From NCBI GenBank assembly GCA_965240325.2, contig OZ251234.1, forward strand, positions 620,001-684,000: a DNA stretch of 64,000 nucleotides, in the 5' to 3' direction. Shown here one piece after another: positions 4,074 to 53,802 of the stretch. Numbering within the stretch: position 1 is the first letter of the stretch; every line of letters begins with the position of its first letter. The notes below the pieces were generated by a model that was given only the letters and a program-made list of their open reading frames with translations, ran no database searches and was not told the origin of the DNA. Both the position numbers and the translations under genes were made by a program. Origin of the DNA: Rebecca billardiae RCC1528 (Eukaryota; Protista; Haptophyta).

Positions 4074-6141
4074 ATCTTTATTGATCAAGAAAAAAGGGAC
4101 GGGGGGCGGCGGAAAAAAAGGGACGGGGGGCGATTTTTAGGGCTGGCGGAGACCGAGTTTCGAGTTTTTGAGATCGCATTGAGAGGTCTATCAGGCCAAA
4201 AAAAAGCGCGCCCAGCTGATTCCCTTAAGTAAAGTGCGATCTGGACGTCAGCTGGACGTGACATTAGTGTAACGGTTCGTTACGAGCGAATCGTACTCGT
4301 CTTCCCGGATCGCGTGACGTCCGGACTGGGCCACATCCGGATCGTCGGAGGTGACTCGTGCCCCGGCACGATGGGCGATGGCGGATATGCGGGACGGCGC
4401 CTGCACGTGCCTCCGGACCCGCCTCCCGCTTGCTGCTCACGCAGTCAGCTGCGACCGTGGCGCATGATCGCAGAAGCAGTGCCGGCAGTACGGCCTGCAT
4501 CAGCTAGTGCCGCGCCGTCGTGGCGCGCGCGGTACGGTTGCGCGTTTGCAGCGCTCGCCGCTCGCCGGCTCGGCGACGGCACGCGCGTGCGGCTCAGGTG
4601 TGTCAAATGCGGTCTCGTCGGCGCGCTTTCGCCTGCCACCTCGTGCACCCGTGCCGCCAGTTTCATCGTCTTCATGAGGACTGCTGCTGCTGTCGCCATC
4701 CGCTCTCCATCACCCCGAGTCGCCGGTCGCGCGGCGCGCGCGGTAGGCACTAGGCAGGGCGTACGGTCACTCACCCGTGCAACGGGTCAAGTGGCCAGAG
4801 TACGTCTGGTCGTTGGCTGGCACGGGCCGCAGCGCTAAAGCACCCTGCTGTCACACCCGACTCCTTCAATACTCCGAGCTCCGCGGCACGACTCACTCGG
4901 CACGATCGCGGACGGGTCGGATCCGAGCTGATCAGCCAGAGTTGGACACAGTTTGGCAGCTACTAGTAGTAATTCCGATGCCGATGGCACGATCGCGGAC
5001 GGGTCGGGTCCGAGCTGATCAGCCAGTTGGACATTTGGCAGCTAGTTGTCAGACGGACGTCCGATTTGACGACCGGTGCCGGGTGCGGTCTCAGGTCCGC
5101 TGCTGTGATTGTGTGAAGTGTGAATGAGTCTCGCGGTCGCGCAGGCAGGGCGACGGTCGGACTAATATATAGCTTCAGTCATCTCAGAACCGACTTCAAC
5201 TGGCGAACTGCCACTACGGCGGAGAGCCGCGATTGCACGGCCACCGCGGGCCCCCAACTGCGTTGATTCTATGCAGAAAAGGACCGCGGAACGCGGTCAT
5301 TCTGCTGCTCATCCTTACTGATGAGCTGCTGCTGCGCTGATATGTTGACGACGATGCGCGCGTAATGACCCGGTGACCGCGCCTGCGGCCCGCTGCGCCG
5401 GCAGGCCCGCGGCCGCGACGCGGGTGGGCCGCCCGGGCCCCGGCGGCGGCGGCCTGACTCGGGCGACAGGCCGCCGCCGTGACAGGCGGGGCCGCCGGGG
5501 CCGGGCCCGGGGCCGCCCGGCCGCCCGCGGCCGGCCGGCCGCCGGGGCTGCGGGGGGGCAGCGCCGCGGGGCCTCGCGCCTCGCTATCCGACCGGGACCG
5601 GCGGCGTCTCATCAGCAGTGACTGTCAGATATAGAGTAGTGATGAGAGACAGCTGAGACAGTCTAGGCTCCGTAGCGGACCGTAGCCGCTGCCCGGCTCG
5701 TCGCTCGTCTATGGTCATGGACTATGATGCTTCGGCTGAGACGTACGGCTCTGCTGAGCCTGAGCCGCCTGATATGTTATTGCGCATGCGCATCATCAGT
5801 CACTAGTGAATCAGTGCAGATCATCATGACGACCGATGATCATCAAACATCATCGGATATATATATCTGCTATATAACTGCTGCTGCTGCTGTAGTCGTC
5901 GTCGCTGCATGAACTGGCTAGCTGCTGCTGCCGGCACACCAAGCGCAGGCACCGTAGGCGTAAGATAAGGGCAGATCGAAGCCAGAAGGTCAAGGTGCCC
6001 GCAGTGAAGCGTGCATCATACCCGAAATAAGTCAGTGTCGCCGTGACCTGTGTCGAAAGCGGCGAAGCCACGAAGCCGCGCTCGGTCAAGGCCGTAGCTA
6101 CTGCCAAGCCCCAAGCACGACGTCGAAGCCGACCGCAGGCG

Positions 6142-7647
6142 TCAGTCGGCCGCCACCGCCGCGCCGTCGGCGTCGTCGCGTGGCCGCTTGACCCCGCTCG
6201 GCGCCCCAGCCGCGCCGTCGCGCGCGCCCGCCTCCCCGCCGTTCGCCGCGGCGGGCGCGCCGGCCGAGCCCGTCCACTGCACGTACGCGCCGCGCGCGCT
6301 GTCGTACCACCAGTACGTAGGCTGCGCGACGCTCGGGTCCCACGACAGCTGGCTCGCCGGGTCAAACAAGAAGCCCGTGCGCACGTTTCTGAACAGCCCC
6401 CCCTCCGCAGGCGCGTACTCGCCGCCCACCGCGCCGCCGCCGCCGTCGGCGGGCGCGAGGGCGGGCGCGAGCGGGCCCGACGCGCCGCCTTGGCCGCCGC
6501 GCGCCGCGCCGCCCAGCAGCTGCTCCCGGCTGCGCGAGTAGACGTCCACCTCGCCCGCATCCAGCAGGGTGGACGCGAGCTCGGTGAGCTGCTCGAAGCG
6601 CGCGCGCTCGTCGGCAGTGCGCGTGTCCGCGCGCGCGCCGTCCTCGCCGCCGCGCGCGCGGGCGCGGCCTCGGCCCGCGCCCCGCGCCGCCGCCGCCGCC
6701 GGCCTGCTCGGCGCGCCCAGCCTGCGCAGCGCCTGCAGCACCGTCTCGTCCGGCCCAAGGAGCACGGCGCACTGCGCGCACAGGGCTGGAACATCGGCCG
6801 AGCGCGCGCGCGCGTCCGCCTGCGCCTCGCGCTCGGCCTGCCGGCGCGCCGCCTCCGCCCTGCGCCGCGTCTTCTCCTCCGGCTCCTTCAGCTCGTCCAT
6901 CGACGCCAGCCACGCATCCGACACGGGCCCGTCGGCCTTGTCCAGCTCACCGTCCGCCTGCGCGCGCGCCGATCGGCGCACGGGGCGCGCGGCGCGGGGC
7001 GCGCGCGGCGGCCGCCGGGCGTGAGCGCGCGGCGCGGGCGGGATGCGCGCGGGCAGCGCACCCGAGCCGCGCCCACCCGCCCCACGCCCCACGCGCGCGC
7101 GCACCACGCGCACGCGGTTGGGCACGTAGTTGAAGTCCGAATCGAAATGGCCACCCTCGCGCTCCGCGTGCAAATTAAACGGCTCGATCTCGTAGCCCGC
7201 CTCCTTGCGGTCGAAGGAGAGGGCGGGCTCCTCGAAGCGCTCGGTCGAGGCGAAGTGGACGCCCTTGTCCTCCGCGCCGAGAGCGAAGCTCGACGAGCCG
7301 GCGCCGCCCTCGCCACCGGTGCTGGGCGCGGCGCCAGCGGCCGAGCCTGAGCCCGCGGCCGAACCCGCGCCGGCCGCAGTTGGACCGCGGCCGCGAGGCA
7401 CATAATCAGCGGGCGGCTCGGCAAAGCCGACGACACTGCGCGCAGTTGACGCGCGGATCGCCGCCGCGCGTGCGCGCCGATGGATCATCTGTGAGCACTC
7501 GCGCGCGTGCAGCGCACGCCGCGCGCATGCGCGCGGTCGCAAGCTAGGCGCTGCGCACCCTCTGCCGCGGCCGGGCACGTATCCCGGCGGCGCCTCGACG
7601 TTGAACTTGTCGGCGAGGTGCGCGAGAGACTTCTTCTTGTCGGCCAT
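6142..7647 (-). CDS. CD2BP2/Lin1 (U5-52K)-like spliceosomal protein with a PRP6-like N-terminal motif and a C-terminal OCRE-like domain; introns 7558-7436 and 7113-6958
   Basis: Motifs EIEPFNLHAEREGGHFDSDFNYV, DAWL, PDETVLQALRRL, FEQLTELASTLLDAGEVDVY; aromatic repeat GFLFDPASQLSWDP..YWWYDSARGAY. Two GT..AG introns (123 and 156 nt) remove non-conserved stretches. Confidence 0.8.
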   Translation of the reverse strand: MADKKKSLAHLADKFNVEAPPGYVPGRGRGCAAPSLRPRACARRALHARECSQMIHRRARAAAIRASTARSVVGFAEPPADYVPRGRGPTAAGAGSAAGSGSAAGAAPSTGGEGGAGSSSFALGAEDKGVHFASTERFEEPALSFDRKEAGYEIEPFNLHAEREGGHFDSDFNYVPNRVRVVRARVGRGAGGRGSGALPARIPPAPRAHARRPPRAPRAARPVRRSARAQADGELDKADGPVSDAWLASMDELKEPEEKTRRRAEAARRQAEREAQADARARSADVPALCAQCAVLLGPDETVLQALRRLGAPSRPAAAAARGAGRGRARARGGEDGARADTRTADERARFEQLTELASTLLDAGEVDVYSRSREQLLGGAARGGQGGASGPLAPALAPADGGGGAVGGEYAPAEGGLFRNVRTGFLFDPASQLSWDPSVAQPTYWWYDSARGAYVQWTGSAGAPAAANGGEAGARDGAAGAPSGVKRPRDDADGAAVAAD

Positions 7648-7743
7648 GACGCCCGCTGGCTGGCCGCACGCTCGCCGTCGGCGGCTGGAGCAACCGGAGC
7701 CAACCTCGCCTCGGCCGAGCCGGCAGCGGCCGAAGGCACCCTG

Positions 7744-10710: not shown

Positions 10711-10822
10711 CTCCTGCTCGCGGACCGTCGGACTCGCGGTCATCAACTAGGGAGTCGTCGCGCCTGACAGAGTCTGACGATTACTCGATGCTGATGACGA
10801 CAGCACTCTGAGTCTGATGAAT

Positions 10823-10893
10823 TGACCGCGTTCCGCGCCCGCGGTCCTTCTGTAAAACCAACGTAGCAGTTGGTCCGAGCCCGCGGTGCACCC
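10823..10893 (-). mobile_element. Solo, degenerate family-A 3' end
   Basis: Reverse complement reads GGGTGCACCGCGGGC...AGGACCGCGG[gcgcgg]AACGCGGTCA, i.e. the family-A end with small insertions. Confidence 0.75.
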
Positions 10894-11137
10894 TATGATG
10901 CTGTCTGACACTGAACAGTGACGACGTACCTATCGGTCGGAACACGGCGCGGCGTTATTCATCACGCCTCGCGGCGCCGTTGATGCCAACAGGCAACACC
11001 GCCAACTCCGACTCCGAGTCCGCGATAGAATTGCTGCGGTCATCTGTCCGCCGACCGGCGCCGGGCGGCGGCCGGTCGGGCGGCGGCCGGCCGCCGCGGG
11101 ACGATTCTGCGCCGCCTGAGGCTCACTGTGAGTCAAG

Positions 11138-11400
11138 CTGCGCCCAGCACCTACCTTAGTACAGTAGCTTACCTACCTTAGCACTGCGCCCACCTACTAC
11201 CTAGTGGCTAGTTACTTGCCAGCAGTACCTTATACCTCACTGCGCCCACCTACCTTAATAATATATATCATCATCAATAATCAGCTACTCACTCACTGCG
11301 CCCACCTAGTTACCTTAACTCCTTGCCTCACTGCGCCCACCTACCTTACCTCATATATATAGACATACTGCGCCCACCAATACTGCGCCGGCTGCGCCCT
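11138..11400 (+). repeat. Degenerate tandem repeat with core CACTGCGCCCACCTACCTTA (about 6 copies), interrupted by micro-insertions
   Basis: The CTGCGCCCAC core recurs at irregular spacing with short insertions (agc, act, tatata, atcatc). Confidence 0.7.
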
Positions 11401-12350
11401 ACTAATAGGCCTAGACGGTTTGCGCTCCGTACTCGTAGCTATCAGAAACGGTGGAACCCCATCAGTTCAGGCGGCTCGGCCATTGTGGCGTCGTCTGGCT
11501 AGTGGCTGTTCTATAACATGCTGTTCGCCTGTTGCCAGTTATTCTTTCATGCAGCCTGGTGTGGCAGCCGGGTGTCTGCTGACCGTATTAGCCAACTCAA
11601 CTAACAGTGCGGCGCCCGCGTGGGTGGGCATCGCCATCGTGGCAGCACTGTATATATATATACTCACTGTAAAATTTAAAAACGGCCCGCCATTCGTCCG
11701 CCTATAGCGTGCCTATTCGTCATCATTATTAGCAGTACAATATATATGCGCAGGCCTCAGTCGTCTGACAGTAAGACTCAGTGTACCTGTACTCACTCAC
11801 AGTCGGTCTCGGCCTGCATGGCGCATGCCTGCCACTCAGTATAGTGCGGACGACGATGATATTACTACGCGGCGGCGGGCTTATAATGCGATCCGGATCA
11901 TCATCTATGACGAATTATAATATATAATAATTTATAAGCAGGCTGGCGGCTTTAAAGTTTACTAAGGGCAGTAGCCAGTTAATAGGCCCGGTGAGGCGGC
12001 AGGGCCGTGGGGCCCGTGGGCTGCAACGGGCCGACCAACGGGCAGTACCGCCGCGCCTGAAGGTTATTTATTTAATAGTATAATATATATATTATTACTA
12101 CTATTATTATTAGGACATGCAAGTTTCTGAATAAAGGTCAGCACTAACTAATAATACTGTAGCTAATCGTCAGACTCCGCGTCGGAGCCTCGGAGGCTGC
12201 GTTGACCAGACTTATAAAGCACGACTTCATCTAAATTAAGCTGTTATTAAGCAGTCGGCGGCGCGTCAGACACAGACACAGACTGTCTCATCGGAGTCGT
12301 CGGAGTCCTCGGGCTCGGACGGCGCCGCGCCCACTGGCACGTGCATGTGG

Positions 12351-13583: not shown

Positions 13584-13813
13584 CGTTGCGGCGGGCGGAC
13601 GTGGCTCTCGTTTCCGGACAGCGGTGCCCACTGCCACAGCCCCCCCCGGCTCGGGCGGCCCCGCATCCGCCCCGCCCCTGACGCGCGTGGCTCACACTCC
13701 ACGGCTAGGAAGCGCTGACGCGCCGAGTCCAGGCTGGCGCAGCACGTGCGCCCGGAAGCTCCACGGGTTGTCGCTTCCTTCAGCCTTCACGCCCAGAGAC
13801 TGCCTGTGCGAGC

Positions 13814-14956: not shown

Positions 14957-14959
14957 TAT

Positions 14960-15040
14960 TGACCGCGTCGGACTCCGCGGTCCTTTTCTGTCAGAATCAA
15001 CCGCCCAGTTTGGGGCCGCGGACGCGGTGGCCGTGCACCC
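14960..15040 (-). mobile_element. Solo, degenerate family-A 3' end
   Basis: Reverse complement GGGTGCAC[ggc]CACCGCG..GGCCCC...AAAAGGACCGCGGA[gtccg]ACGCGGTCA; begins 4 bp after the sulfotransferase stop codon. Confidence 0.75.
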
Positions 15041-15438
15041 CGTCGCATATAGCAGACACTGCTACGATCTGCTCACTTGTCCGTAGTCGTCACGACTGGT
15101 GCTTGCTAGGACCTACGGCCTACCGGCCGCCGGGCCCGGGAGGCTGCGGGCAAGCGGGGCCGGAGCCCTCGCTCGGCTGCAGTTCCGGTATAATAACTAA
15201 GTGATAAACTGATTTAAAGACAGTAATAAAGTGATCGGACCGGAGGCGAATGCAGCATCATTGCCGGGTGCAAGCTGGCAATGCCCGCCTGAATGGTATA
15301 TTACAAGACCTGACTCTGGCAGACAGTCTGTGACGCCGACGAGTTGACGAGTCTGGTATGGCAGCGGGATCCTGGTCCGGCCGGACCGGATCGCTTGCCC
15401 ACCGTTGTGCGTTGAGGAACGGGCGCGGCGCACGAATA

Positions 15439-18786: not shown

Positions 18787-18803
18787 ATTGAACCACCTTC
18801 CTA

Positions 18804-20000: not shown

Positions 20001-20231
20001 CTCCGCCGGCGGAGATTTTTGTGGCCACCAAAATCCCCGCTGGCGGAGCATGGATGCCCAGAATGCTCCGCTGGCGGAGCCTGGGCTTGCAGGAATGACA
20101 TAACAAACTAGTTACCAGAAGTCTGTCAACCACCGAACAGCAGTCACCTCCGCTGGCGGAGCTCGCTAATGAGCCATGCCTTTGGTAAACTAATACACTC
20201 GCCACTTGAACTGAGCTCCGCTGGCGGAGCT
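20001..20231. repeat. Five spaced copies of the palindrome CTCCGC(C/T)GGCGGAG
   Basis: Copies at 20001, 20037 (partial), 20065, 20148 and 20214. Confidence 0.75.
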
Positions 20232-20877
20232 TCGGGGGCGCCGAATGCCATTCTTGACAGGGCTGGGAGTTCGTGATCACGTGAGCGTGATATCACTGCG
20301 TGATCACACGTGACACGTGATCACGTGACGCGTCACGTCGGCAATGGGTCCGTCACGTGACAGCAGTCCGGTAGTCATGGTGCGCACCCGGACAGGCCCC
20401 CGGGTCCGAGGCCGCGGGGCAGTGCGCGCCTGTGCGGCGGGGCGGCGCCGACTCGCCGGGTCCTCGAATCCGAGCCACTGAGGCGGGTTCGCGGCAGCCA
20501 GTGAGTGCGCGCGAGCTGGCCAAGTTGATGGCTCGGCAGGCGACTGTGAGGCGAGCCTCAATCCTCATGCAGGTCTTCAAAGCCACTGCCGGGGGCTGCT
20601 GACCGCGACTACTGACTAGTCGGAGTGCAGCTGATGTCTAATCGCGCTCTTCATGAGTCTGACTCGTCAGTACTGATACAGTGATAGTCTGTCGTAGTTA
20701 GATTTCGTCATTATTCACTCCCAAATAGGCCCAAAAAATTTCTTCGCAGCCTCGGGCCGGCGGGGCCCCGGGGGGGGAACCCCGGACCCCCCCGTGGGCC
20801 GGACTCGTCACGTGATGTGGCCTCACTCGGCCTCGGGGCAGGCCGTGCGACGGTGCGTCTGGCCGTGCCTGCGGTCT

Positions 20878-22256: not shown

Positions 22257-23039
22257 ATGGGATCCCTGCACAGCACTGCTGTGTTTGCCGAGGTCCCGGG
22301 CATGGTGTGCGTCGTCTACCCGTGGACGCCCGACGACTCATGCTACGCGTGCACAGCCAACGAGTGGAGCTACTACCACTCTCGCTTCGACATGATCGCA
22401 GACCAGGTACCCCAGGCGTTGGCTGGGCGCGTGCCGCTCGACCTGTGGTACCGCCTGCTTGACGGCTGCCACGAAGCATCTCGCCCGGATTACCTGTACT
22501 ACAAGTATGGCTTCGGTCTGGGCCTCATGACGCTCGTGCTTCTCGTGTTCATCCTGGCGCCCACGCTGGGCCTCGTATGGGGCGTTTTGCCCTTCGTCCT
22601 CGTAGGCGTCCCCATGGCCGTCGTTCAGCGCATTCTTGCCATCATCCTGAACCGCAAGCTCTCGACTCTGATCGAGCGCCTGCGGCCGGAGTTTGAGGCG
22701 ACGGGCTGCTCCATCGAGTGGCGCTGCGCGTGGGTGGGCGGGATGGAGGCGCTCTCGCGGCACGTGTGGGTGGAGATCATTGCCGGCGGCTCCTTGCATC
22801 CCGCTGGTGGGCGAGGGGCGGCCGGTGCAGGGGGCGCCGGGCCCGGCGCTCCCACACGTGCGTGGGAGCAAGCGTCGGTCACGCCTGCTGCAGCGTCGCG
22901 AATTGCGCCAGTCCGCCCGGGCCGTGAAGACGCGGGCGAAGGGCGGGCTGTTGCCAGCGGCGACAGTGGTGACGAGGCCGACAGCGTTCGGCGATTCGCG
23001 ACCGACGATCCGGCGACAGAATCGGACATGGCGGCGTGA
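22257..23039 (+). CDS. Two-TM membrane protein, Erf4/Golgin-A7-like
   Basis: VPQALAGRVPLDLW, a hydrophobic hairpin, then LSTLIERLRPEFEATGCSIEW. Family assigned by motif recall only. Confidence 0.55.
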   Translation: MGSLHSTAVFAEVPGMVCVVYPWTPDDSCYACTANEWSYYHSRFDMIADQVPQALAGRVPLDLWYRLLDGCHEASRPDYLYYKYGFGLGLMTLVLLVFILAPTLGLVWGVLPFVLVGVPMAVVQRILAIILNRKLSTLIERLRPEFEATGCSIEWRCAWVGGMEALSRHVWVEIIAGGSLHPAGGRGAAGAGGAGPGAPTRAWEQASVTPAAASRIAPVRPGREDAGEGRAVASGDSGDEADSVRRFATDDPATESDMAA

Positions 23040-33286: not shown

Positions 33287-33307
33287 ATCCGTATGTCGGG
33301 AGGTGTC

Positions 33308-38615: not shown

Positions 38616-39748
38616 GCTTTATTATTATTTTTAAAAAATAGATCGAGTTATATAGTAGTGTCATCCGCCATTCGGTAACCGCCACTGGCGCCGCCAGCCG
38701 ACCGCTACGTACGACAGCCGGCAGCCGCGGCGGGTCGGGCGAGCCAGGCGACTGAGGCGAGAGTAGTATATATATATAGCCTTTGCTCCGACAGCCGTGT
38801 TTGCCATCAGTATTCAGTACCAGGGTGTACCGTAGTAGTCTAATAAGTAGAATCGTGCGTAGCTAATTACACCGGGATCGGGGATGGGTGACCAGCACGC
38901 GCCACGCTTTCATTGTCACTGTCAGCCAGGGGCGTTGCGCCAGCTGGACAAACACGGTTCCGGTCTTCTTCAGATCTCGCTTTTCAAAACGAAATGTTCC
39001 GGCCGTGCCCTAACCCCTTGTAACTAAAGTTCTCTGTATGTAATTTACCCACCACAGGTGGCTCCGGCTCCAGTCCACCCCCCCCAGCTCGTCCGTTACG
39101 TCTTGGCCCCGAGCCGAAGTCAACCAAGCGGACCATGCAGCAGAGTCCCCGCCAGTTCCGACCCCCGATTGATGACTTCAACGAGAAATGTCGCATCCTC
39201 GGACCACCTCCCAATATGTTCAGACTCTATTTTTGCTATGTAATTACCCGTCCCTGACTCAGTTTCAGCACAGTCCGGGAGCGTTCCGGACACCGGTATA
39301 CATATGCGAAAATTATACCCGGACTGGGTATTTAGTTATATAGAAAATAGAGTCTGAACCTATTGGAGGTGTGGCTGATGATCTGCATCTGGCCGTAATA
39401 TCGTCCAAGGGACCGCCTGGGGTGGGCTAGGAGCTATTGTAGATCATCAGAGGCTGCGATCCCGTCGATCAGTGCAGTGTCAAGATGTAACGCTCCACTG
39501 ACCGGACTGGGGGGGGTGGACCGAAGCCGGAGCCAGGTCCAAGGATCCTGGGTCTTGGGTCCTTCGCGTTTGTCCAGCTGGCGCAACGCTCCGGGGTCGT
39601 CGGTACAGTTTACTACGTACAGTTTACTAAGAATAAGAGACGCACACAGCGGCAGGCAGGCGAGATTGACGCCCAAGAATAAGAGACGCAACCTGCCACC
39701 GTGAGCCTTACGCACGTTAAAACAAATAAACTGTACGCTTTCCACCGC

Positions 39749-43806: not shown

Positions 43807-43845
43807 TCACGCCTTAACCAAGTGTGCACGTTAAAACATAGTAAA

Positions 43846-46800
43846 CTGTAGGCGTCGCGCGTGCGCGGACGCCGGTCTACGGCGGGGATGGCGCTCACCA
43901 AGGCGACGCGAGGGGCAGGGCCCGCCTTGCGCCACGCGCCCAAGGCGGCACACGAGCTTGACGGCCGTGCGCGGGCGCCTCTTGGTGGCGAGAAGACCCG
44001 GTGGCAGCATTCCCGCCGCCTTGTCGACGCCCTCGCCACCTTTTCCGCGCGCAGAGACTGCTGACTGGCACGAGCGGCCTTGAGAGAAGGGACTTGAAGG
44101 CCTGCCCGATGAGGCGCACGAAGGGCACGCGTGCGCCCCTGAGGTATTCAACGGTCGGGGTTTTCGCTTCTGTGCGAGGGGCCTGAGAGTGCTGAACAGC
44201 GCGAGGGGCCTGAGAGTGCTGAACATCACCGCTGCGTCTTGAGCCATGCTGGCATCGGTCAGACCGCACGCATGTGCTACAGTACGGTGACAGCCCGGAC
44301 TGAGGCCAGTGTCACTTGGCATTCGCGCCGCCGTTGGCACGCGTCGCACAGTTCAGTAAGTGTTGCGTCGACTCCCGATACCTTGCGGTCTGCTTCGTCG
44401 CGCATGCCTCGACCTCCCTACGAATGGCTGCATGGGCACCCGGCTCGCTTGGCCGGCGGCCGGGAGTCAGTGCCGATGGCCGAGTGTTACTCGACCGGCC
44501 TTCTTCGTGCAGCAGTCCGGACACCTTCCTGCTCCAGATCAGACCACACCATGCTACCAGCGTAGGTACACACGAGCCTGCAGACGATCGCTCACAGGTC
44601 GAGCGCGCTGTCTACGGCCAGCAGGTGCCCGAGAACGCACCATGCGGCAACATGAGCATTTGAGGTGTTTGAACAATATACTCACCAAGCAACAAAACCG
44701 CTCAACTCCGCTGAGTATGCACGGGGATCGTCGCGCGCGGGGGCTCGCCGACGCGCCAACACCTAGGCCCATCAGGCGGACGCTGTAACTCGTCCTTAGG
44801 AGGCCTCTGGCACTTGCGTGCGCGCGTTCTCGCGCGGCGTTCCGCATGGTGTACATGTCGCGTCGAAAATAACAGGGCCCTGCGCGCGGCGAGAGCGGCG
44901 AGGGCGGGCAGGAGCGCGCGGGCGTGAGGCCCATAGGTGTCCTCGGCCGCGCCGACCTCGCGCGCGCACCCGCAGCGGCCGTGGGTGCGCGTTCGAGCGC
45001 GCCGCGTGAGGCCGCCATCGTGCCGTGCGCGCGCCGAGCCCCATCCTGTCCGTGCTGGGGTTTGTCTGACAAGTCTTGGGCATCCGGATCATCCACGATG
45101 GCCGAGCTCGTGGCCGAGCTCGACGAGCAGGCCTTGGCGCGACAGGCGCTCGATGAGGAGGGAACGATCATGCAGGCGATAACGCTGACGCCCGTGCAGC
45201 AGCTACTGCGCATACCTCCGTTGCTCGTCCATCTCGCCGGGCTCGTCATCACGCCTGAACAGCACGCCGCGCTTGCGGCCGGGCAGCCCGTCGAGCTTTC
45301 CGCCGAGCAGGATCGGCAGTTTGCTCGCCTGCAGATCTACTTCCACACGGCGAAGCAGGAGCGTGAGCCGGGCCTCGGACAAGCGCGCCTCTTCAAGCTC
45401 GCGCCGTCCTTGATACAAACGCCGCCGTCGCTTCCGCCTGCCGACGTGAGCGCGCATGCGCCTGCGGTGGATCAGGCGGCTGCGCAGGCACGCGCGCGAG
45501 AGGCGGAGGAGGCGCTCCTGGCGGAGATCGAGGCTGAGGAGCGAGCCACGCGTAGTAAGCGAGGCCGCCGAGGCGGCCGCGGCAAGCGCCAGGCGCACAA
45601 CGCGCCCCCAGCCCCTCACGACAGCACGGACGACTCATCGAGCGCGGACGAGCCGGAAGCCGACGAGGGACACGCCGATGGCGCGAGAGGCGCGCAGCTG
45701 CATGGCGCTTCCCTCGAGGCGCTCGCCGCACTGCGGCCAGTGCCACTCGACGAGGCCGACTTCCGCCCGGAGGATTGGGTCGAGGTGGTGCCGCGCCGAC
45801 ACAGGAAGCAGCAGCTGGCAGCGATGACCGCACCCGCACTTGACGGGGCAGGCCAAGCGCCGCCGCTCGATGCCGTCTCGGCGTGGCCCCGTGCGGACAG
45901 CGGCGGCGCAGCGGCGCCAGCATCGTCCCGCGTGCCCGAGCCGGCTGCGACTGGGTCCGCGCCCGCAGAGCCGGCGCCCGCCGAGGAGGCGGTGCGCCCG
46001 GCTGCGGCGGCGACCGCGCCCACTGAGGCGGTGGAACCGGATCGCGCCGCTGTGACGTCCTCCTCCGCTGCGCCCGTGGCTTCGCGCCAAGAGCCCACCG
46101 CGCCGCGCGCGCAGCCGGTGCTGTCCCATGGCACTGCCACGGCCGCTGCGTCCGCGCAGCCCCCGACGCGCTCGGCCAACGGCCCACCAGTGGCGACCGC
46201 GGCAGATGCGGCCGGCGGGATGCTGCGTGCGCGGGTGCCGTCAGAAGTGCATGCAGCGGCTGCGCAGCCGATCGCATCGCCCTGGGTCGGCGCGGCGGGC
46301 GACGAGTGCGCGGCGAGCATCGGCGAGGCCGTGCGCAGGTACGTGCACCAGGTGCTCAGCTCAGAACGCGCAGCACACGACAGCGCACTGCGCCGTGCGC
46401 TCCAGGAGGCGCATGATCGCTCCGAGGCTCGAGTGCAGTCGCTGCGGCTGCGGCTGTACATTGCGGAGAACAAGTGCCACGAGCTCGAGCAGATGGTGCG
46501 GGAGCTGCAGGCGACGGTCACGCAGCTACGCACGACGCCGGCTGGTGGATCCGGTCCGGGCGACGGCTCCCGAGCCTTTGACGGCTCACCCACCTCGGCG
46601 ATCACAGTGCTGACGGTCAACAGCGCGGCCACAGCGGATGGTGGCGCCGATGCCGGTCTCGCCGCGGCGGCTGCGGCTCGCGGTGCCTCGGGCTCTCCTC
46701 GAGGGACCTCGCCGGACGACCATGTGTGATCATGTGACGCAACACAACGGCCAAAGCTGTCAACCATCACTGGATCACTTACGGGGCGATTGACCGCACG

Positions 46801-47433
46801 ACGCTCACAAAATGCTGGTCACGCAGCAGCCGCTGCCAGTGCGTGCCCACGAGTCGTCATTATTCGCATCGATCAATCACAATGGCTGCGACTTCGCCGT
46901 CACTGAGCAGCAGTGCTGCACAGTGCACGCTCTGTCGCGCTCACAAGTGGCTCCAGTCCTATACCCTGGCCAGCCCCCAACCAACTGCATGGGCTCCGGC
47001 TCTGGACAGAACTTCGCGGAGTCGGACCCGCCCCCGCCAGTAGCCATCACTCATCAGTGCTGCTGCTGACCGTGCGGGCGGTGAGTGACTGGCGGCCGGC
47101 CGGCCGAGCCCGCCGCCGAGGCCTCCCGGCAGCGCTAAACGGCTAAATCAGCCCGGCTGGTAGCTTAGTGGTAGCGTGTCACCAGTTGTTCAGCACTGGT
47201 CTCTGCGCGCAGAAAGCGTAGCGAGGGCGTCGACAGCATTACTAGCAAGGCGGCGAAAATGCTGCCCACCGCCGGGTCTTATCGCCACCAAGAGAGAGGC
47301 GCCAGCGCACGGCTGTCAAGCTCGTGTGCTGCTTTGCGGGCGCGTGGCGCAAGGAGGGCCCTCGCGTCGCCCGGTGAGCGCCATGCCGCCCATGGGGCTT
47401 GGCGTCCGGCGTCCGCACGCGCGACGCCTACAG
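43846..47433. repeat. Diverged ~220-bp inverted repeat pair (43846-44058 / 47199-47433) enclosing a gene
   Basis: CTGTAGGCGTCGCGCGTGCG...GCGCGCAGAGAC and its reverse complement; no TSD seen. Confidence 0.75.
45098..46729 (+). CDS. Hypothetical protein with a C-terminal coiled coil
   Basis: 543-aa ORF with host-like composition; heptad region RVQSLRLRLYIAENKCHELEQMVRELQATV. Confidence 0.7.
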   Translation: MAELVAELDEQALARQALDEEGTIMQAITLTPVQQLLRIPPLLVHLAGLVITPEQHAALAAGQPVELSAEQDRQFARLQIYFHTAKQEREPGLGQARLFKLAPSLIQTPPSLPPADVSAHAPAVDQAAAQARAREAEEALLAEIEAEERATRSKRGRRGGRGKRQAHNAPPAPHDSTDDSSSADEPEADEGHADGARGAQLHGASLEALAALRPVPLDEADFRPEDWVEVVPRRHRKQQLAAMTAPALDGAGQAPPLDAVSAWPRADSGGAAAPASSRVPEPAATGSAPAEPAPAEEAVRPAAAATAPTEAVEPDRAAVTSSSAAPVASRQEPTAPRAQPVLSHGTATAAASAQPPTRSANGPPVATAADAAGGMLRARVPSEVHAAAAQPIASPWVGAAGDECAASIGEAVRRYVHQVLSSERAAHDSALRRALQEAHDRSEARVQSLRLRLYIAENKCHELEQMVRELQATVTQLRTTPAGGSGPGDGSRAFDGSPTSAITVLTVNSAATADGGADAGLAAAAAARGASGSPRGTSPDDHV

Positions 47434-48347
47434 CTTGGGACGTCAACCCCCGAGATCGGGCTCGCAGCGGCCCGGACACGATGGCGCGCCCACGAGAGGC
47501 GCGCGTGCGCCCGCCTACCGGCGCTGCAGGCCGGCGCGGCTGATCGGCGCGGTCCACAGGACACGTGGGCACCGCGCGCGCCTCTTTTCCTGTCCTCTCG
47601 CGCTCCTCGCCGCGCGCAGTAGCCCGCTGCCAAGCCATCAACGCCTGCCAAGCGAGCCGGCGCGCGCACCAAGGGCGCGCGCTCGGCGCGGATAGGGCCA
47701 ATTAAGGTCGGGGCACGGCATGGGCGAGTGGGCACGCATGTTATACACCGCTCGGGCGCACGCGCCCGGCGTTCTGCGCGCGCCCTTGCCCCTGGCAAGT
47801 GCTCGCGCACTGCGCGCGTAACTCACGAATGGTGCACCTCGCGGCAGCCCGCAGGGTATGCTCTGCATGGAGGCATCCTTCGCTTCCCAGCGGGCGAATC
47901 GGTGCCAGCCGCAGCCTGGGGGTCGTCTGTGAGTACCCCGGTCCAAGATGCCCCATGGGCACGCTGATACGGGCCGCCATGTCGTCGATGCTGCCGAGGA
48001 GTGCCGAGCGGCCCTGCTCTGTGACGTCCCGACTCCCGGCACATGGGCCTTGTCGACTCTCGACCTTCCGCTCCGAGTTCATCACGCCAGACGCAGGCGA
48101 TGCCGCTGTGGACGCTCGCGTTCGACCACTTCGTACCCACCAGACCGGCCCTTCTGTCTCTGTTGGCGTGGGTGGCGTGCGCGCGCGCGCGCGTGCCGCC
48201 TGCCGCCACAGTACAGTGAGACGTAGTCGGTGCCGCGGACGCGGTGGCCGTGGGCCGCGTAGCGACCTGCTCGGACCTCGGATAGTCGTAGTCGCTTTAA
48301 AATAAGACTGCACAGCCTGGTTGATTTATGATACATATACAGCATAT

Positions 48348-50320
48348 ATGGCGGGCCGTAGGTCCGCCCCTTGTAGTGCCCGGGAAAAAGATAAGAAAAA
48401 TAAAATGAAAAAATAAAATCGCCTCGCAAAGAAAAGAAAATCGCCTCGCTCACTGCCGGGTCGCTTCGCTCACTACCGGGCGCCCTCGCAGCTCCCACTG
48501 GGGACGCTCGGCCGAAAACCATCTGCGCCATGGCGCGGAGCGCATGGGCCGCGCGCGCCAAATCCAACGCCGGCGCGGACATCGCGCGGGGATTCCCGAG
48601 ACGTGTTTTCGCCCGATTCGCGATTGCTGCCCTCGTCGTCTCGCGTGCAGGTCGAACGGGGGCTAAATCGACGCGTTTGGAGCGGTACGCTCGGCGCGTC
48701 GACACGATCGTGCGACCTGGGGCGATCCTCGCCCGACGTGCACGTCGAAAGCTCGCACCGGCCATAGCATCATGCGCTGCGCACGATGGCCGCCTCGCGC
48801 GATCCACCGTCGCGCGTCGGGCTCGGTGCGGAAACGCATTCATCACGAGGCGTCTCGCGGGCGGGAAGCGCCATCGCACGCGACGCAAGCTTTGGCGCGG
48901 CCTTCTACACCATACAGTAACCGGAATCCACACACCGGACTGTCGCGTGCCCCGGTTGGCACAAGGGCGTTCCCGGGATCCTGCCACACGCTCCGAACGG
49001 CATGCCCCCCCCTGGGGGGGCATGGCTACGGACTGGCGCGGGCCATAATATCAAATGTACCCGCTTGAGATAGAGAAAGCCAATTTCAATAGGAACGCGG
49101 TTCGATTTGGCGTATGACCAGGCTTCGGCCGCCAGCCTGATCACCCGGAGCCCGTTATAAAGGGGAATTTAATAGTGCGGGGAACGCCCCTGAAGGTCGG
49201 GCGCATGAAATCCGTTTGCTACGATCGGTGGTTTTCCAGAGCGAGCGATCATCTTTCACGCTCGCGAGCTCGCGACCAAAGATCGCTCGGCGCCTGAGGG
49301 CCCACGTCCAGCCTGCATGGCGTCGACGGTGGCCAGTGCGACGGAGGCGCAGCGCGAAGCGGCGTACGAGGCGCACCGCACGCACCTGCCGGTTATACCG
49401 CCGTGGCCGGAATCGCGTCTTCGCGAATCGGCGACTGAGGCGACAGCGCGCTATAACCGATCCCAGGTGCGCATTCGCGACGAGCTGAAACGTCGCGCGT
49501 GCAAGATCGCCGCACCATACTTGTCCATGGCACGGACGCTGCGGGACGAGGCCAACGTCGTGAAGCCAGTGGCGCATGCGCTGCGCTTCCTGTGCCTGCT
49601 CGAACAGCGCGTGCCCACCCTCGATCGCGAGTGGCACACGCTCTCGCACTGCGCGCGCGCGCACCACCGAGAGCTCCTGATACCGCCGAACGTGCGAGTG
49701 CCGGACCTGTCGCGCGGAGCGGCGAGCGCCAACGAGCGCTTGGACCTGGACGCGCTGTTGCGCAGCGTGGCGGCCGTGCACGACGCCGACACGACCTTCG
49801 CCGAGCCCATCGTGCCCGGAGCGGACATTGGCATCCTCGCGACACACCATCTCAGCTGGCAGCACGAGGAGATGCTCACAATCTCCTCTGGCGGATTCGT
49901 CGGCGGCGAGGCGCTCGACTACGTCATCGCGGTCGAGATGCGGCACATGCAGCGCGTACGCGCGCTCGCGCGGAGCAACGGGCTGCCCGCCCCGCCCCGC
50001 GTGCTGCACGTTCCCTCGTGGGTGTGGACCTTGCTGATGGGCGCAGGCGTGTACGCGTGGGAGAAGGTGGCTGCACGAGTCGACAGGACACACACGATCT
50101 CAGCTACGAGGGTCACGCGAATGATCATGGTGCGTGATGAGGCATGTGGGCACATCGTGTTCGTCAGTGCCGTCGGGTAGCTCACCATCATCTGTATGTC
50201 GCATTGTTATTCGTCATCCTGCCAGTCAATCCGCGCTAAAAGACGCGAACCCGCTGGGGAAATATTGCGACAGCACTGGCACGGCCCGCCGACCCCCCCG
50301 CCCGCCAGGGCAGAGTTTAA
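48348..50320 (+). mobile_element. Family-B Helentron-like element, copy B1
   Basis: 5' ATGGCGGGCCGT; subterminal inverse ACGGCCCGCC (50281-50290); short stem GCCC-GCCA-GGGC (50300-50311); AT-rich flanks. Confidence 0.7.
49317..50180 (+). CDS. Cargo ORF whose C-terminal part resembles a truncated Ulp1/SENP (peptidase C48) domain
   Basis: LTISSGGFVGGEALDYVI ~ L..L....WLNDEVINFY; LHVPSWVWTLL..YAWEKV ~ FNSFFY.KL..Y..V; MIMVRDEACGHIVFV ~ IFIPI...HW.L. The ORF stops before a catalytic Cys. Confidence 0.5.
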   Translation: MASTVASATEAQREAAYEAHRTHLPVIPPWPESRLRESATEATARYNRSQVRIRDELKRRACKIAAPYLSMARTLRDEANVVKPVAHALRFLCLLEQRVPTLDREWHTLSHCARAHHRELLIPPNVRVPDLSRGAASANERLDLDALLRSVAAVHDADTTFAEPIVPGADIGILATHHLSWQHEEMLTISSGGFVGGEALDYVIAVEMRHMQRVRALARSNGLPAPPRVLHVPSWVWTLLMGAGVYAWEKVAARVDRTHTISATRVTRMIMVRDEACGHIVFVSAVG

Positions 50321-50321
50321 T

Positions 50322-51630
50322 ATGGCGGGCCGTAGGTCCGCCCCTTGTAGTGCCCGGGAAAAAGAAAAGAAAAAGAAAAGAAAAAAGAAAATCGCCTCGC
50401 CAAGAAAAGAAAATCGCTTCGCTCACTACCGGGCGCCCTCGCAGCGCTCTCCCACTGGGGACGCTCGGCCGAAAACCATCTGGCGCCTGGCGCGGAGCGC
50501 ATGGGCCGCGCGCGCCAAATCCAACGCCGGCGCGGACATCGCGCGAGGATTCCCGAGACGTGTTTTCGCCCGATTCGCGATTGCTGCCCTCGTCGTCTCG
50601 CGTGCAGGTCGAACGGGGGCCAAATTGACACGTTTGGAGCGGTACGCTCGGCGCGTCGACACGATCGTGCGACCTGGGGCGATCCTCGCCCGACGTGCAC
50701 GTCGAAAGCTCGCACCGGCCATAGCATCATGCGCTGCGCACGATGACCGCCTCGCGCGATCCACCGTCGCGCGTCGGGCTCGGTGCGAGAAAGCCCTCAT
50801 CACGAGGCGTCTCGCGGGCGGGAAGCGCCATCGCACGCGACGCAAGATTTGGCGCGGCCTTCTGAACTCGATCGCCGGAATCCGCGCACCGGACTCAGTC
50901 ATTGCTCGCGGTCCGGTCCCTCAGCCGAAGCCCACGTCCGGCCTGCATGGCGTCGACGGTGACCAATGCGACGGAAGCGCAGCGCCAACGGCGTACGACG
51001 CGCAGCGGACGCACCTCCCGGGTCTGTCGCCGTGGCAGCAACCGCGTCATCGCGAGTTGGTGACCCTCGCCGCAGCGCGACACAGACAAGCCCGTGATGC
51101 CATCCGCAGAGAGATGAAACGTCGAGCATGCAACTAATCGCCGCGGCATGGCCTCGTCCATGGCGCAGGCGCTGCGGGACGAGGCGGAAGTCGTCACGCC
51201 GGTGACGGATGCGCTGCGATTCGTGTGCTCGCGTGAGCAGCGCTTGCCCACTCTCGATCGCGAGTGGCACACGCTGTCGCTGTGCGCGCGCGCGCGCACA
51301 ACCGCAACAGCTCCTCGTGCCGCCGAGCACGCGAGCGCCAGACCTGTCGAAGAGGCGAAGAGCGACGACCGCGTGAACGTCAACGCGCTCGTGATTCCCT
51401 CGTGGGTGTGGGCCTCGCGGATGGAGTGATGCGCATACTACTAAGAGTACAGACCGTGAGACGTGTGTACACGTCGGAGAGCCAACTTCACGTGTCACTG
51501 GGGCCTTGCACTCGACTGTCCGTCACCCACGGCCACGAGCGAATGTGGAAAGCAGACGCGAACCCGCAAAGGATACATTGCGACAGCACTGGCACGGCCC
51601 GCCGACCCCCCCGCCCGCCAGGGCACAGTT
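50322..51630 (+). mobile_element. Family-B element, copy B2 (deleted, cargo ORF broken)
   Basis: Same 5' ~540 bp and same 3' end as B1 (ACGGCCCGCC at 51594-51603); diverged cargo remnant (PTLDREWHTLS, IPSWVW). Confidence 0.7.
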
Positions 51631-51631
51631 T

Positions 51632-53637
51632 ATGGCCCGCGGTGCAGGGCGGAGCGCGCAGCGTGGAGCCCGCACCAGCGGGCCCGAACCACGTTTCAAA
51701 AAGATCTTTGATCAAGAAAAAAGGGACGGGGGGCGATTTTTAGGGCTGGCGGAGACCGAGTTTCGAGTTTTTGAGATCGCATAGAGAGGTCTATTAGGCC
51801 GAAAAAAAGCGCGTCCAGCTGATTCCCTTAAGTAAAGTGCGATCTGGACGTCAGCTGGACGTGACATTAGTGTAACGGTTCGTTACGAGCGCGATTTTAA
51901 GTATGAGATTGCCGCCAACCGCCAACCGATAAAAACGGCAAGGCAAGGGCTCGGGAAACTTGATCACTTCTAAATGTGAATAGTAAAATGCTCTCCCCGA
52001 GCGCGCCTGTCGCCTCGCAGGCCGCGCGTCTAGCCCTCTCGCTCCGCTCTCCCCGAGGCTGAGCTCGCGGCCCGCCTGTCACCTCGCAGGCGCGCGCCAC
52101 GGACACATGCGCGACGAGATCGCGGCGGGGGCGGCGAGATCGCGGCGGGGGCGACGGGCAACAACCTGCCCGCGGGCGCGTTCGTCACTCGAGGAGCAGC
52201 GCGCAAGGGCGAGCCGAGTCCGGAGCACGCGAGCTCGTTATCGCTCGCCGACCGGAGCAGAGCGCGCCGCCCGCCGCCGCCGAGCGAGCGGCGCGGCAGA
52301 GCTGATGAGCCGGATGCGCCCGGAGCTCGCGCGGCTGAAGGGCGAGCTCGAGCACGCGAGCTCGCGCCTCGACGCCGAGCCCGAGCTCCTCCTCAACTCG
52401 GTCGACGGCGGCGCGGAGGTCCGGCAGCAGCGTGAGGACTCACAGACAGTGTGAGTGAGCCGCGCGCAGCTCAGCCTGCCGCTGGCAGCCGCCGTCTTCG
52501 AGGCCGACGCGGCGGAGGAGGCGGCGGGCGACGAGATCGCGACGGGGGCGGCGAGATCGCGGCGGGGGCGACGGGCAACAACCTGCCCGCGGGCGCGTTC
52601 GTCACTCGAGGAGCAGCGCGCAAGGGCGAGCCGAGTCCGGAGCACGCGAGCTCGTCGCTCGCCGACCGGAGCAGAGCGCGCCGCCCGCCGCCGCCGAGCG
52701 AGCGGCGCGGCAGAGCTGATGAGCCGGATGCGCCCGGAGCTCGCGCGGCTGAAGGGCGAGCTCGAGCACGCGAGCTCGCGCCTCGACGCCGAGCGCGAGC
52801 TCCTCCTCAACTCGGTCGACGGCGGCGCGGAGGTCCGGCAGCAGCGTGAGGACTCACAGACAGTGTGAGTGAGCCGCGCGCAGCTCAGCCTGCCGCTGGC
52901 AGCCGCCGTCTCCGAGGCCGACGCGGCGGAGGAGGCGGCGGGCGAGCACGGCGGCGCGGTGGAGCAGGCGCGCACGCGCGGCGGCAGGCGCGACGCGCCG
53001 CTCGCCTCGTTCCACCGCCCCGAGCTCCGCTCGGTCGGTCTCGGTGCGCGGCTGCGCAGCCGGCAGGCCGGCGGGCCAGCAGTCTGCAGTGGCGCGCGCT
53101 CTCGCTCTGCCGGCACGAGGCGTGCCGGCTGAGCGACCAGCGGCCCGTCGTCGAGCGCATGGCGCAGGGCGAGTACCTCAAGCAGGTGCGCCCGCTCGCG
53201 CGCACGCGCCGGCTCGCGACCAGCGGCCCTTCGTCGAGCGCATGGCGCAGCGCGAGCACCTTGCAAGCAAGCTGAAGCAGGTGCGCCCGCACGCGCGCAC
53301 GCGCCGGCCCGGCGCCGCGCGGCGCCTCTCGCCCTCTCGCCCTGCGCGCGCCGCCGCCCCGCTTCCCCGCGCGGCCCGTCCGCGCCTCTCGCCCTGCGAG
53401 CGCGCCGCCCCGCTTCCCCGCGCGGCCCGTCCGCTGGTGTCCCATGCCACCCTTGGCCGTGCGCGCCCGCATACTCGCCGAGTCCGAGACTCGGTCTCGG
53501 GTCTAACTCTCCCTCTCAGAGTGGCTGAACTGTCTTTCTGACTCGGACTGACTGACTCGTCAGTCTCATTCTCAACCACTGCGCCGCGGGCCCCGAACTG
53601 CGTTGGTTCTACGGAAAAGGACCGCGGAACGCGGTCA
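51632..53637 (+). mobile_element. Family-A element, copy A3, with an internal 414/417-bp tandem duplication (52111-52527, 52528-52941)
   Basis: 5' ATGGCCCGCGGTGCA; TGCgCCGCGGGCC (53580-53592); hairpin 53620-53636 followed by (AT)n. Confidence 0.8.
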
Positions 53638-53802
53638 TATATATATACATACATACATCGTCATCATTCTGCACAAGTGATGTTCGTCGGCCGCCTCCAG
53701 TTTCCTATCCAAGCTGCACACGTACCATCAAAGTTATTAATTTGTCAACGACTAAGTGCTGAACCGATTTCATCAACTTTCTTATTTGCTGTTGGGAGTT
53801 GG

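Follow-up and report, generated by a model that had tools for sequence, protein, structure and literature searches.

Short tandem duplications in the DNA past stop codons of Rebecca billardiae, a plausible case of cryptic simplicity

What process fills the DNA downstream of genes with short stutters and palindromes is the question raised by this locus of Rebecca billardiae, a haptophyte of the Pavlovales whose compact genome is very GC-rich (roughly 65-70% GC). All counts given here come from one 64-kb stretch of that genome, hereafter the window, and from eight RNA contigs. Genes in the window are laid out as divergent pairs with promoters of about 180 bp, so that the longer non-coding stretches nearly all follow a stop codon. 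A first-pass annotation had named a series of patches in such DNA and had interpreted them as "footprint fields" left by transposons, with a templated-insertion repair pathway as its alternative. The named patches do fall downstream of stops, in intergenic sequence between convergent or tandem genes.

Texture of the patches and their place among genes

When measured against dinucleotide shuffles, the patches hold 3.4 times the expected number of 3-nt stutters (z 17), 3.8 times that of 4-nt stutters (z 11) and 4 times that of 10-nt palindromes (z 9). The same measures reach 1.1-1.5x in CDS, and the divergent promoters show no palindrome excess over dinucleotide shuffles. The stutters had been described as 2-3 bp long; the 3-nt class is enriched, as is the 4-nt class, but 2-nt stutters stand at only 0.8-0.9x expected. 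Nor do the patches consist largely of such elements, a wording too strong for tandem repeats and palindromes that together cover 51% of patch bases versus 34% expected. (TA)n, (GGCC)n, GC-rich islands and, at 20272-20361, a cluster of CACGTG account for many of the palindromes, and those of mixed sequence are in roughly two-fold excess. The duplicated units are diverse and share no target consensus. The patches are poor in homopolymer steps and in runs of purines or pyrimidines, and stop-codon trinucleotides occur on both strands at 1.35x expected. Trinucleotide use relative to the upstream gene is strand-symmetric, which favours an origin at the level of DNA and speaks against motif selection at the level of RNA. 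Long (AC)n, (TG)n and (TA)n arrays are present near the patches.

Patch strength differs greatly between genes, and the patches are mosaics, with repeat ends and small families of repeats among their contents, rather than uniform fields. The strongest simple-sequence patch (5560-5930) is found 210-580 nt past the stop codon of a minus-strand gene at 6142-7647 and has a local 4-mer recurrence of 8x expected; over 5300-5930, tandem repeats and palindromes cover 69%, and the sequence there includes a GC-rich (92%), hairpin-forming island at 5377-5584. Similar islands occur at 3808-3860 and 11044-11104, and inspection by eye showed others near 15110-15170 and 20750-20810. The largest patch (10711-12350) lies between the convergent genes for a Mut7-C exonuclease (plus strand) and ALG3 (minus strand); at 11138-11400 is a degenerate plus-strand array of a 20-nt motif, with insertions of 3, 4 and 3 nt in three of its five full copies. 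At 28617-29200, ATG, CTG and CGT stutters form a strong patch after (TA)n. On the plus strand, texture directly follows the stop of a sodium:sulfate symporter gene (38616-38900), where contig L006 stops 13 nt past the stop codon, and that of the ORF at 45098-46729; this latter patch (46730-47180), with 4.0 per 100 nt, is the richest in 3-4-nt duplications of all zones chosen without bias. GACT repeats, a repeat end and (TA)n or ATAC repeats make up the patch at 53480-53680. Of the patches named originally, those at 14960-15360, 20270-20720 and 26740-26950 are only weakly simple. The surrounding convergent interval at 14957-15438 has weak simple texture and is matched by contigs L001 and L009 without indels; the one at 20099-20877 has weak stutters, its palindromes being mostly those of the CACGTG cluster; and 26740-26950 is an AT-richer spacer of weak-to-moderate texture, which precedes a repeat unit starting at 26954.

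The position of the duplications was assessed in zones set without regard to texture. Within 400 nt after 12 stops there are 89 triplet duplications versus 53 expected (1.7x, z 5.1), and before 9 starts there are 46 versus 43.5 expected (1.06x), so that the proposed enrichment 3' of genes is borne out in these small samples.

Among the repeats that reside in these zones is a 65-nt repeat end, found five times in the window, which has a 7-bp stem, a 3-nt loop and then a T-rich stretch, and which forms the end of a larger repeat unit. Comparison of repeat copies places it at 5236-5300 on the minus strand; at 10822-10890 on the plus strand, 112 nt past the Mut7-C stop and with two 6-nt insertions that the other copies lack; at 14958-15040 on the plus strand, with a 5-nt loop insertion that is palindromic with its flank; at 28617-28680 on the minus strand, where it opens the stutter patch and adjoins its (TA)n; and at 53578-53640 on the minus strand, within the patch mentioned above. 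We considered this hairpin element as a gene 3'-end signal or a structured RNA and rejected both, given that its orientation to the upstream CDS varies and that it is the end of a larger unit. Its fold is no better than that of shuffles (z -0.75), Rfam and tRNA scans gave no match, and a search for more copies in metagenome and viral collections returned chance 18-mer matches only. A non-autonomous terminal-inverted-repeat (TIR) element with many TGTACCA subterminal repeats, set in microsatellites, occupies 33296-34291, and its two ends differ by +2, +4, +6 and +3 nt. An autonomous transposase beside a solo TIR at 53805 was also considered and received no support from the Pfam or Atlas search.

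Sizes of the duplications and direction of change

In the census of tandem duplications in the patches, the ratio of observed to expected is 0.8x at 2 nt, 1.9x at 3 nt, 2.1x at 4 nt and 1.0x at 5 nt, with 115 two-copy duplications of 3 nt versus 60 expected and 31 of 4 nt versus 15. There is no excess in the patches at 1, 2 or 5 nt; duplications of 6-9 nt are present in smaller numbers than those of 3-4 nt, and one event of 8 nt was counted. Whereas transposon footprints had been predicted to give peaks at the target-site sizes 2, 3 and 8, the peaks lie at 3 and 4, with nothing at 2, 5 or 8. Most stutters are two copies in otherwise unique sequence, indicating de novo events rather than microsatellite growth. 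Triplet arrays of at least three copies number 20 versus 1.5 expected (13x), a mark of slippage.

Short direct repeats were also counted as recurrences of 5-nt words, with an order-2 Markov model as the null. Observed and expected numbers are 104 and 12 at spacing 3, 57 and 12 at spacing 4, 73 and 8 at spacing 6, and 16 and 8 at spacing 30. The excess of direct repeats falls off with distance, with enrichment at every spacing of at least 3 except 5, and at short range inverted as well as direct short repeats are enriched.

Repeat copies within the window also give a direction to the change. When small indels are polarised by majority among the copies, about 13 are insertions and 2 are deletions, an uncommon ratio for eukaryotic DNA that evolves neutrally. 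Of the 13 insertions, about half repeat the flank in tandem, exactly or nearly so, and one, the 5-nt loop insertion at about 14970, is an inverted copy of it. On these small samples the first-pass annotation was right about an insertion bias and about insertions that copy neighbouring sequence, micro-insertions being the dominant change in the 3' zones, and the four indels that it cited (about 14970, 4933 vs 5020, 52237 vs 52654, and 33356) are all present. Two plus-strand tandem duplicates offer close comparisons: the copies of about 88 bp at 4890-5062 differ by +2 (AG, in tandem), +3 (CAG) and other small indels, and those of about 414 bp at 52111-52945, which are 99% identical, differ by one 3-nt indel. 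The longer, unpolarised indels between paralogues start with the 4-6 nt that come after them, which constitutes junction microhomology.

Comparison of RNA contigs with the assembly

The RNA contigs, which are Illumina-based, match about 1.6 kb of the 3' zones of the assembly. Contig L005 matches 5896-6141 without indels, the ALG3 transcript contig L002 extends to 11938, and 11894-12248 matches exactly to 151-nt pieces of another data set. The texture is thus reproduced in short-read data, which rules out an assembly artefact as the source of the texture as a whole, a concern that the first-pass annotation had itself raised.

In the 3' zones covered by contigs (about 1.6 kb) there are 5 indels and 2-3 substitutions, versus no indel and 12 substitutions in about 9.4 kb of covered CDS and 5' DNA. 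Between contig L007 and the assembly there are four indels, all within 120 nt, and not one substitution over 1193 nt. These indels, which lie in the plus-strand 3' UTR patch (23040-23240) of the gene at 22257-23039, are at 23115 (3 nt), 23144 (7 nt), 23217 (3 nt) and 23234 (1 nt); they comprise TGA/TGATGA, TCG/TCGTCG, a 7-nt near-tandem copy and a change in a G run, three of the four being copies of adjacent sequence, and none comes with a deletion, each being purely a duplication or a change in copy number. Such a cluster on a substitution-free background suggests either that indels arise here at a very high rate or that a single complex repair took place. Given that these indels rest on one contig, an artefact is less firmly ruled out for them than for the texture.

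A larger difference lies between 12339 and 12340, where contigs L001 and L003 carry a GC-rich insert of 73 nt (minus strand, 11 nt 3' of the ALG3 stop) that is absent from L002 and from the window. It has no target-site duplication and no match in the window. We rejected an intron, as its boundaries do not allow the short form to be produced by GT-AG splicing.

Origin of the texture and its known relatives

The balance of the evidence tilts toward a reading of the patches as non-coding DNA of the 3' UTR and terminator zones that is cryptically simple and prone to indels, built by slippage-type duplication. The main source of new sequence would be de novo tandem duplication of 3-4 nt of neighbouring DNA, with duplications of 6-9 nt and an occasional copy from the opposite strand as lesser sources. 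This may be no more than the ordinary origin of short insertions, namely misalignment of primer and template in replication or repair synthesis, with slippage later growing some duplications into short arrays and point mutation scrambling them. The product would then be interleaved with decayed non-autonomous repeat ends, GC-rich hairpin islands and true microsatellites, and DNA once simple would itself be more prone to indels. As for location, we infer tolerance rather than targeting: zones past the stops would be nearly the only DNA to tolerate such change, the promoters being short and constrained. Cryptic simplicity, reportedly described by Tautz, Trick and Dover in 1986, calls for a local excess of short direct repeats beyond composition that decays with distance and for new insertions that copy adjacent sequence, and both are found here, the latter in three of the four L007 indels and in about half of the polarised insertions. 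The triplet arrays likewise agree with a rate of slippage that rises with copy number. Slippage is, however, usually strongest for the shortest units, and the lack of excess at 1, 2 and 5 nt makes the size spectrum odd for plain slippage. Nor does slippage explain the two-fold excess of mixed-sequence palindromes, and the 73-nt insertion without target duplication counts against this reading, which does not account for it. The preponderance of two-copy stutters in unique sequence, the ratio of insertions to deletions near 13:2 and the clustered L007 indels on a substitution-free background weigh against it as well.

In the transposon model of the first-pass annotation, cut-and-paste elements repeatedly enter and leave landing pads downstream of genes, depositing target-site bases and palindromic filler. 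Non-autonomous elements and solo ends do occupy the 3' zones, beside microsatellites such as (TA)n; an element with a 3-bp target site would be expected to leave a 3-nt tandem duplication, and TACWGTA, the canonical Tc1/mariner scar, occurs 6 times versus 2.2 expected under a local null (P about 0.025), with two of the six in the largest patch. Yet target-site duplications measure 2 bp for Tc1/mariner, 3 for CACTA and 8 for hAT, and a 3-bp family, which alone fits the observed sizes, would leave the 4-nt and 6-9-nt events unexplained. Stutters and L007 variants are exact tandem copies of many unrelated units, with no filler, element-end or trimmed bases found between them, and the triplet arrays point to slippage. 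The window holds the one TIR element and the five repeat ends, and no transposase was recognised among its large ORFs. In addition, about 100 events beyond expectation in 5 kb imply precise visits in enormous numbers, and three independent cycles within 120 nt on a substitution-free haplotype are implausible. We consider this model quite improbable, and footprint-like sites should not be taken as a sign of transposon activity. It is harder still to credit that the texture was selected for 3' end formation, RNA stability or chromatin rather than arising as a mutational by-product. The texture begins near stop codons within transcribed 3' UTRs, and the depletion of homopolymer steps and of purine and pyrimidine runs, together with the surplus of stop trinucleotides, might suit such a function, but the strand symmetry of word use, the diversity of units, the uneven strength among genes, the indel variation and the absence of a matching Rfam family all speak against it.

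Break repair is the remaining source to be weighed. There is a small chance that gene 3' ends are hot spots of break repair, by staggered-break fill-in or templated end joining, which would write 3-4-nt duplications into the germline at a rate well above that of substitutions, with a strong bias to insertion by which DNA between convergent genes would be continuously extended and overwritten and the repeats landing there eroded. In the staggered form, which we hold to be unlikely to a similar degree, abortive cleavage by topoisomerase II would leave 4-nt 5' overhangs where supercoils gather between convergent genes, or another enzyme would make 3-4-nt staggered cuts, and the overhangs would be filled and end-joined into tandem duplications. 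This would account for an insertion-biased excess of 3- and 4-nt units only, in non-repetitive sequence of transcribed 3' zones, and for the absence of spacing 5, the sole one of at least 3 that is not a sum of 3s and 4s. Published systems do yield such products: topoisomerase II mutants of yeast and human, etoposide and Top2 overexpression give de novo duplications of 2-4 bp, which require end joining and show enrichment where transcription is high, and the authors noted evolutionary implications (Stantial et al. 2020, Boot et al. 2022). However, neither the 6-9-nt duplications nor the triplet arrays are predicted, and the sizes differ from those of Top2, as set out below. Somewhat less probable again is end joining of the polymerase-theta type, in which microhomology-primed abortive copying, direct or snap-back, would leave templated insertions in the 3' zones. 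The joint short-range enrichment of direct and inverted repeats, the inverted loop insertion at about 14970 and the junction microhomology of the longer indels are all consistent with it, and the four clustered L007 indels could be one error-prone repair tract. Against this, a typical product of such end joining is a deletion with filler, which the L007 indels are not, and many palindromes stem from self-complementary microsatellites, GC islands and the CACGTG cluster.

Should the small-sample signals hold genome-wide (indels that equal or outnumber substitutions in 3' zones, insertions to deletions at about 6:1, and units of 3-4 nt), this would be a natural case of insertion-driven non-coding turnover in a compact genome, with bearing on the insertion-deletion balance that sets genome size and on whether transcription-linked break repair leaves a mark in evolution. 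In practice, the 3' UTRs of Rebecca billardiae are unreliable for alignment-based markers, and the building of repeat consensus sequences must tolerate many small insertions.

The closest relatives of the texture are cryptic simplicity and the short insertions of flies and primates, most of which duplicate sequence in tandem, in a simple or a complex manner and at times from the reverse strand; deletions there carry junction microhomology (Tanay and Siggia 2008, PMC2374710). With these it shares scrambled short motifs, a local excess of direct repeats, the copying of adjacent sequence, now and then from the reverse strand, junction microhomology, and a strong dependence of indel rate on sequence context. 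Unlike theirs, its excess is limited to 3-4 nt (plus 6-9 nt), its insertion bias appears strong, and it is concentrated past the stop codons of a compact GC-rich algal genome. The Top2 signature (COSMIC ID17 / ID_TOP2alpha) resembles it in small exact tandem duplications in non-repetitive sequence, in substitutions that are not raised and in an association with transcription; however, 4 bp is its commonest size and 2 bp is frequent (3 bp being under-ascertained in the yeast assay), whereas here 3 nt exceeds 4 nt without any excess at 2 nt, and the published cases are somatic or mutant-driven, not germline and genome-shaping. Natural variation in C. elegans, reportedly shaped by polymerase-theta templated insertions (PMC4032859, PMC4490562), shares the local direct and inverted templating in non-coding DNA, the variants here differing as pure duplications without deletion. 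Footprints of hAT, CACTA and Tc1/mariner elements, lastly, are alike in their small insertions, possible palindromic bases and transposon remnants in the same zones, and unlike in their family-specific sizes, filler and target consensus, with no transposase recognised and the Tc1/mariner scar rare at this locus.

Texture of the sequence downstream of stop codons

The window derives from a Pavlovales haptophyte, since its minus-strand ALG3 gene encodes a protein 63-65% identical to the counterparts in Diacronema lutheri and Pavlovales sp. CCMP2436. The genome of D. lutheri is compact, with 73% GC and 45% single-exon genes (PMC8379373). GC per kilobase across the window is 58-84%, and the mostly intron-poor genes, defined by long, Pfam-matching ORFs that are strongly GC-rich at third codon positions, lie in divergent pairs about 180 bp apart (gaps between listed ORFs at 13637/13814 and 21921/22098) with their 3' ends convergent. 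Logan contigs from runs ERR14847148-51, which look like transcript assemblies, match the window at 98.8-100%, confirm six genes and reach 13-482 nt past the stop codons.

Eleven patches 3' of stop codons (5.1 kb) had been described in the first-pass annotation as consisting largely of 2-3 bp stutters, that is, short tandem duplications, and palindromes. Measured against dinucleotide shuffles, this texture is real: stutters of 3 and 4 nt occur at 3.4 and 3.8 times the shuffle level, and palindromes of 6, 8 and 10 nt at 1.6, 2.3 and 4.1 times. While the triplet stutters were borne out, those of 2 nt, like those of 5 nt, show no enrichment over expectation, and "largely" was an overstatement, given that tandem repeats and palindromes cover 51% of patch bases where 34% is expected. 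On a sliding map, simplicity is strong at 5700-5900, 11100-12200, 28700-29100, 38600-38800 and 53500, as well as at two places that had not been listed (48100-48400 and 50200-50400), but weak in the listed patches at 14960-15360, 20270-20720 and 26740-26950. The texture was also said to be absent from coding sequence and divergent promoters; no palindrome excess over shuffles was found in the short divergent promoters, but in coding sequence triplet stutters reach 1.5 times the shuffle level and other classes about 1.1-1.3 times.

An event census of the patches gave 115 two-copy duplications of 3 nt (60 expected), 31 of 4 nt (15), 4 of 5 nt (4.2), 6 of 6 nt (1.2) and 4 of 7 nt (0.4), together with 20 triplet arrays of at least three copies against 1.5 expected. 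Relative to an order-2 Markov model, short direct repeats are in excess at all spacings of at least 3 except 5, an excess that wanes by 20-30 nt, and inverted repeats at gaps of 0-20 reach 1.5-4 times expectation. Words of 3-6 nt likewise show a direct-repeat excess in the patches at each spacing from 3 to 15 nt, 5 excepted. AAG, GGA and GAA-type purine/pyrimidine runs and homopolymer steps are depleted about two-fold there. The simple repeats (TA)n and (GGCC)n, GC-rich islands and a CACGTG cluster account for many of the palindromes, leaving about twenty mixed-sequence ones with arms of 5-6 nt, by a rough estimate about twice the expectation. The cluster, a dense set of overlapping CACGTG-centred palindromes of G-box or E-box type at 20272-20361 and 20805-20815, between two convergent genes, looks more like a putative binding-site set or a repeat end than mutational texture.

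As the patches had been picked by eye, zones were set blind to texture. The 400-nt stretches that follow 12 stop codons together hold 89 triplet duplications against 53.1 expected (z 5.1), compared with 46 against 43.5 (z 0.4) in those that precede 9 start codons, and the reported enrichment downstream of genes therefore holds, albeit unequally, with 0.8-4.0 events per 100 nt depending on the gene. In the 3' zones, words are used symmetrically on the two strands with respect to the upstream gene, which points to an origin at the DNA level rather than in RNA motifs. Three transcript contigs end 13-246 nt past the stop, where simple sequence begins (38615-38628, 20819-20877 and 5896); these ends could mark nearby poly(A) sites or places where assembly broke off in variable DNA of low complexity.

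Repeat copies and the direction of indels

True microsatellites are among the patch contents, as are several other elements. A 65-nt element (stem 7 bp, loop 3 nt) with five window copies adjoins (TA)n and forms the terminus of a larger repeat unit, found at about 26954-28680, at 51632-53640 and partly at 2814/4114-5300; the other two of the five stand alone as solo ends, one 4 nt and one 112 nt past a stop codon. A non-autonomous terminal-inverted-repeat (TIR) element of about 1 kb (33296-34291) contains many TGTACCA repeats and has a solo TIR at 53805. In both copies of a small repeat (3777-3860 and 20715-20810), an A-rich leader precedes a hairpin of some 50 nt made of G and C alone. The patches also contain GC-rich islands, 40-200 nt long, that can form hairpins, and a degenerate array of a 20-nt motif spans 11138-11400. 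The segments 24424-26647 and 29269-31496 form a large inverted duplication (95% identity overall, 99% across 1.4 kb) with 214-bp tandem-repeat arrays within long ORFs that have no Pfam match. At 47150-47200, 3' of a patch, the sequence resembles a tRNA 5' half (A-box-like GGTAGCTTAGTGGTAGCG), for which ARAGORN gives no tRNA call.

Comparing repeat copies, we recovered all four indels cited in the first-pass annotation. Pairwise comparison is unable to polarise indels, and majority rule was used where at least three copies exist. By this rule the 65-nt family has 7 insertions (1-6 nt) and 1 deletion, the 20-nt motif 3 insertions (+3, +4, +3) and no deletion, the TIR family 1 insertion (+2), and the repeat-start family 2 insertions (+4 exact tandem, +24 tandem) and 1 deletion; the control, the GC-rich 214-bp arrays, has no insertion and 1 deletion. 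The total of about 13:2 (two-sided binomial against 1:1 estimated at ~0.007) tentatively upholds the proposed insertion bias, although the sample is small and could be distorted by subfamily structure. In about half of the polarised insertions the added bases repeat the flank in tandem, exactly or nearly, and in one they are its inverted copy, giving a palindrome. Several longer indels (7-23 nt, pairwise and unpolarised) open with the 4-6 nt that come after them and would fit microhomology-mediated deletion or near-tandem duplication equally.

Differences between transcript contigs and the assembly

One contig, L007, aligns to 22257-23457 with no substitutions and four indels, all at 23115-23234 in the 3' UTR: TGA/TGATGA, a 7-nt near-tandem copy, TCG/TCGTCG (the contig being longer) and a G-run of 3 versus 2. 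With a single contig as their source, these indels may reflect a local error of assembly; the other contig alignments, about 11 kb, contain no such micro-indels. Between contigs and window, some 1.6 kb of 3' zones hold 5 indels and 2-3 substitutions, as against 0 indels and 12 substitutions in about 9.4 kb of coding and 5' DNA. A few 151-nt pieces from the listed runs match exactly at 11894-12248.

A 73-nt GC-rich, hairpin-forming insertion (-35.6 kcal/mol) lies 11 nt beyond the ALG3 stop (site 12339-12340, minus strand; L001:3283-3355) in contigs L001 and L003 from two runs; L002, from a third run, and the assembly do not carry it. No target-site duplication flanks it, and its sequence is matched nowhere in the window. 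Similar GC islands, a regular presence in 3' zones, may come and go as whole units. At the other end of the gene, L002:1-72 and L003:1-72 share an identical 72-nt start, which joins at 13631-13633 (minus strand) exactly after an AG and has no match in the 64-kb window, whereas the third contig is genome-colinear; possible sources of this start are a 5' exon lying far away, trans-splicing, an insertion confined to one allele, or chimerism of the contigs.

Origin of the micro-duplications

The observation itself is largely real, and an insertion-biased, 3'-enriched micro-duplication is tentatively supported. What caused it had been sought in transposon insertion and excision at reused landing pads, a model that is not supported and fares worst: sizes of 2 and 8 nt form no peak, the duplications show neither filler bases nor a target consensus, no transposase was recognised in the window, and the canonical Tc1/mariner scar occurs just six times against 2.2 expected. 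Templated insertion by polymerase theta would explain part of the pattern, namely the inverted copies, but leaves the pure duplications unaccounted for.

On our analysis, the best explanation appears to be tandem-duplication-type insertion, or cryptic simplicity, an older concept that the patch features match. Short insertions would arise as copies of adjacent sequence, now and then from the reverse strand, and the location of the patches would largely be set by where a compact genome tolerates change. Plain slippage sits poorly with three things: events of 1, 2 and 5 nt show no excess, insertions seem to outnumber deletions, and four indels cluster without substitutions. These misfits, together with the avoidance of spacing 5, the sole spacing from 3 up that cannot be reached by summing 3s and 4s, keep an origin of the duplications in break repair alive. 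Among known processes the nearest to it is that of topoisomerase II, whose signature of transcription-linked de novo duplications of 2-4 bp differs from the patches in size mode. With modest probability, the texture stems from a more specific process tied to gene 3' ends.

Sequence evolution of this kind is already known, and the window offers a strong local case of it. Flies and primates show the same pattern in their short insertions (PMC2374710), which the patches resemble in their exact copies of adjacent sequence, a few copies from the reverse strand, microhomology at the junctions of possible deletions, many different duplicated units, growing arrays and strand symmetry.
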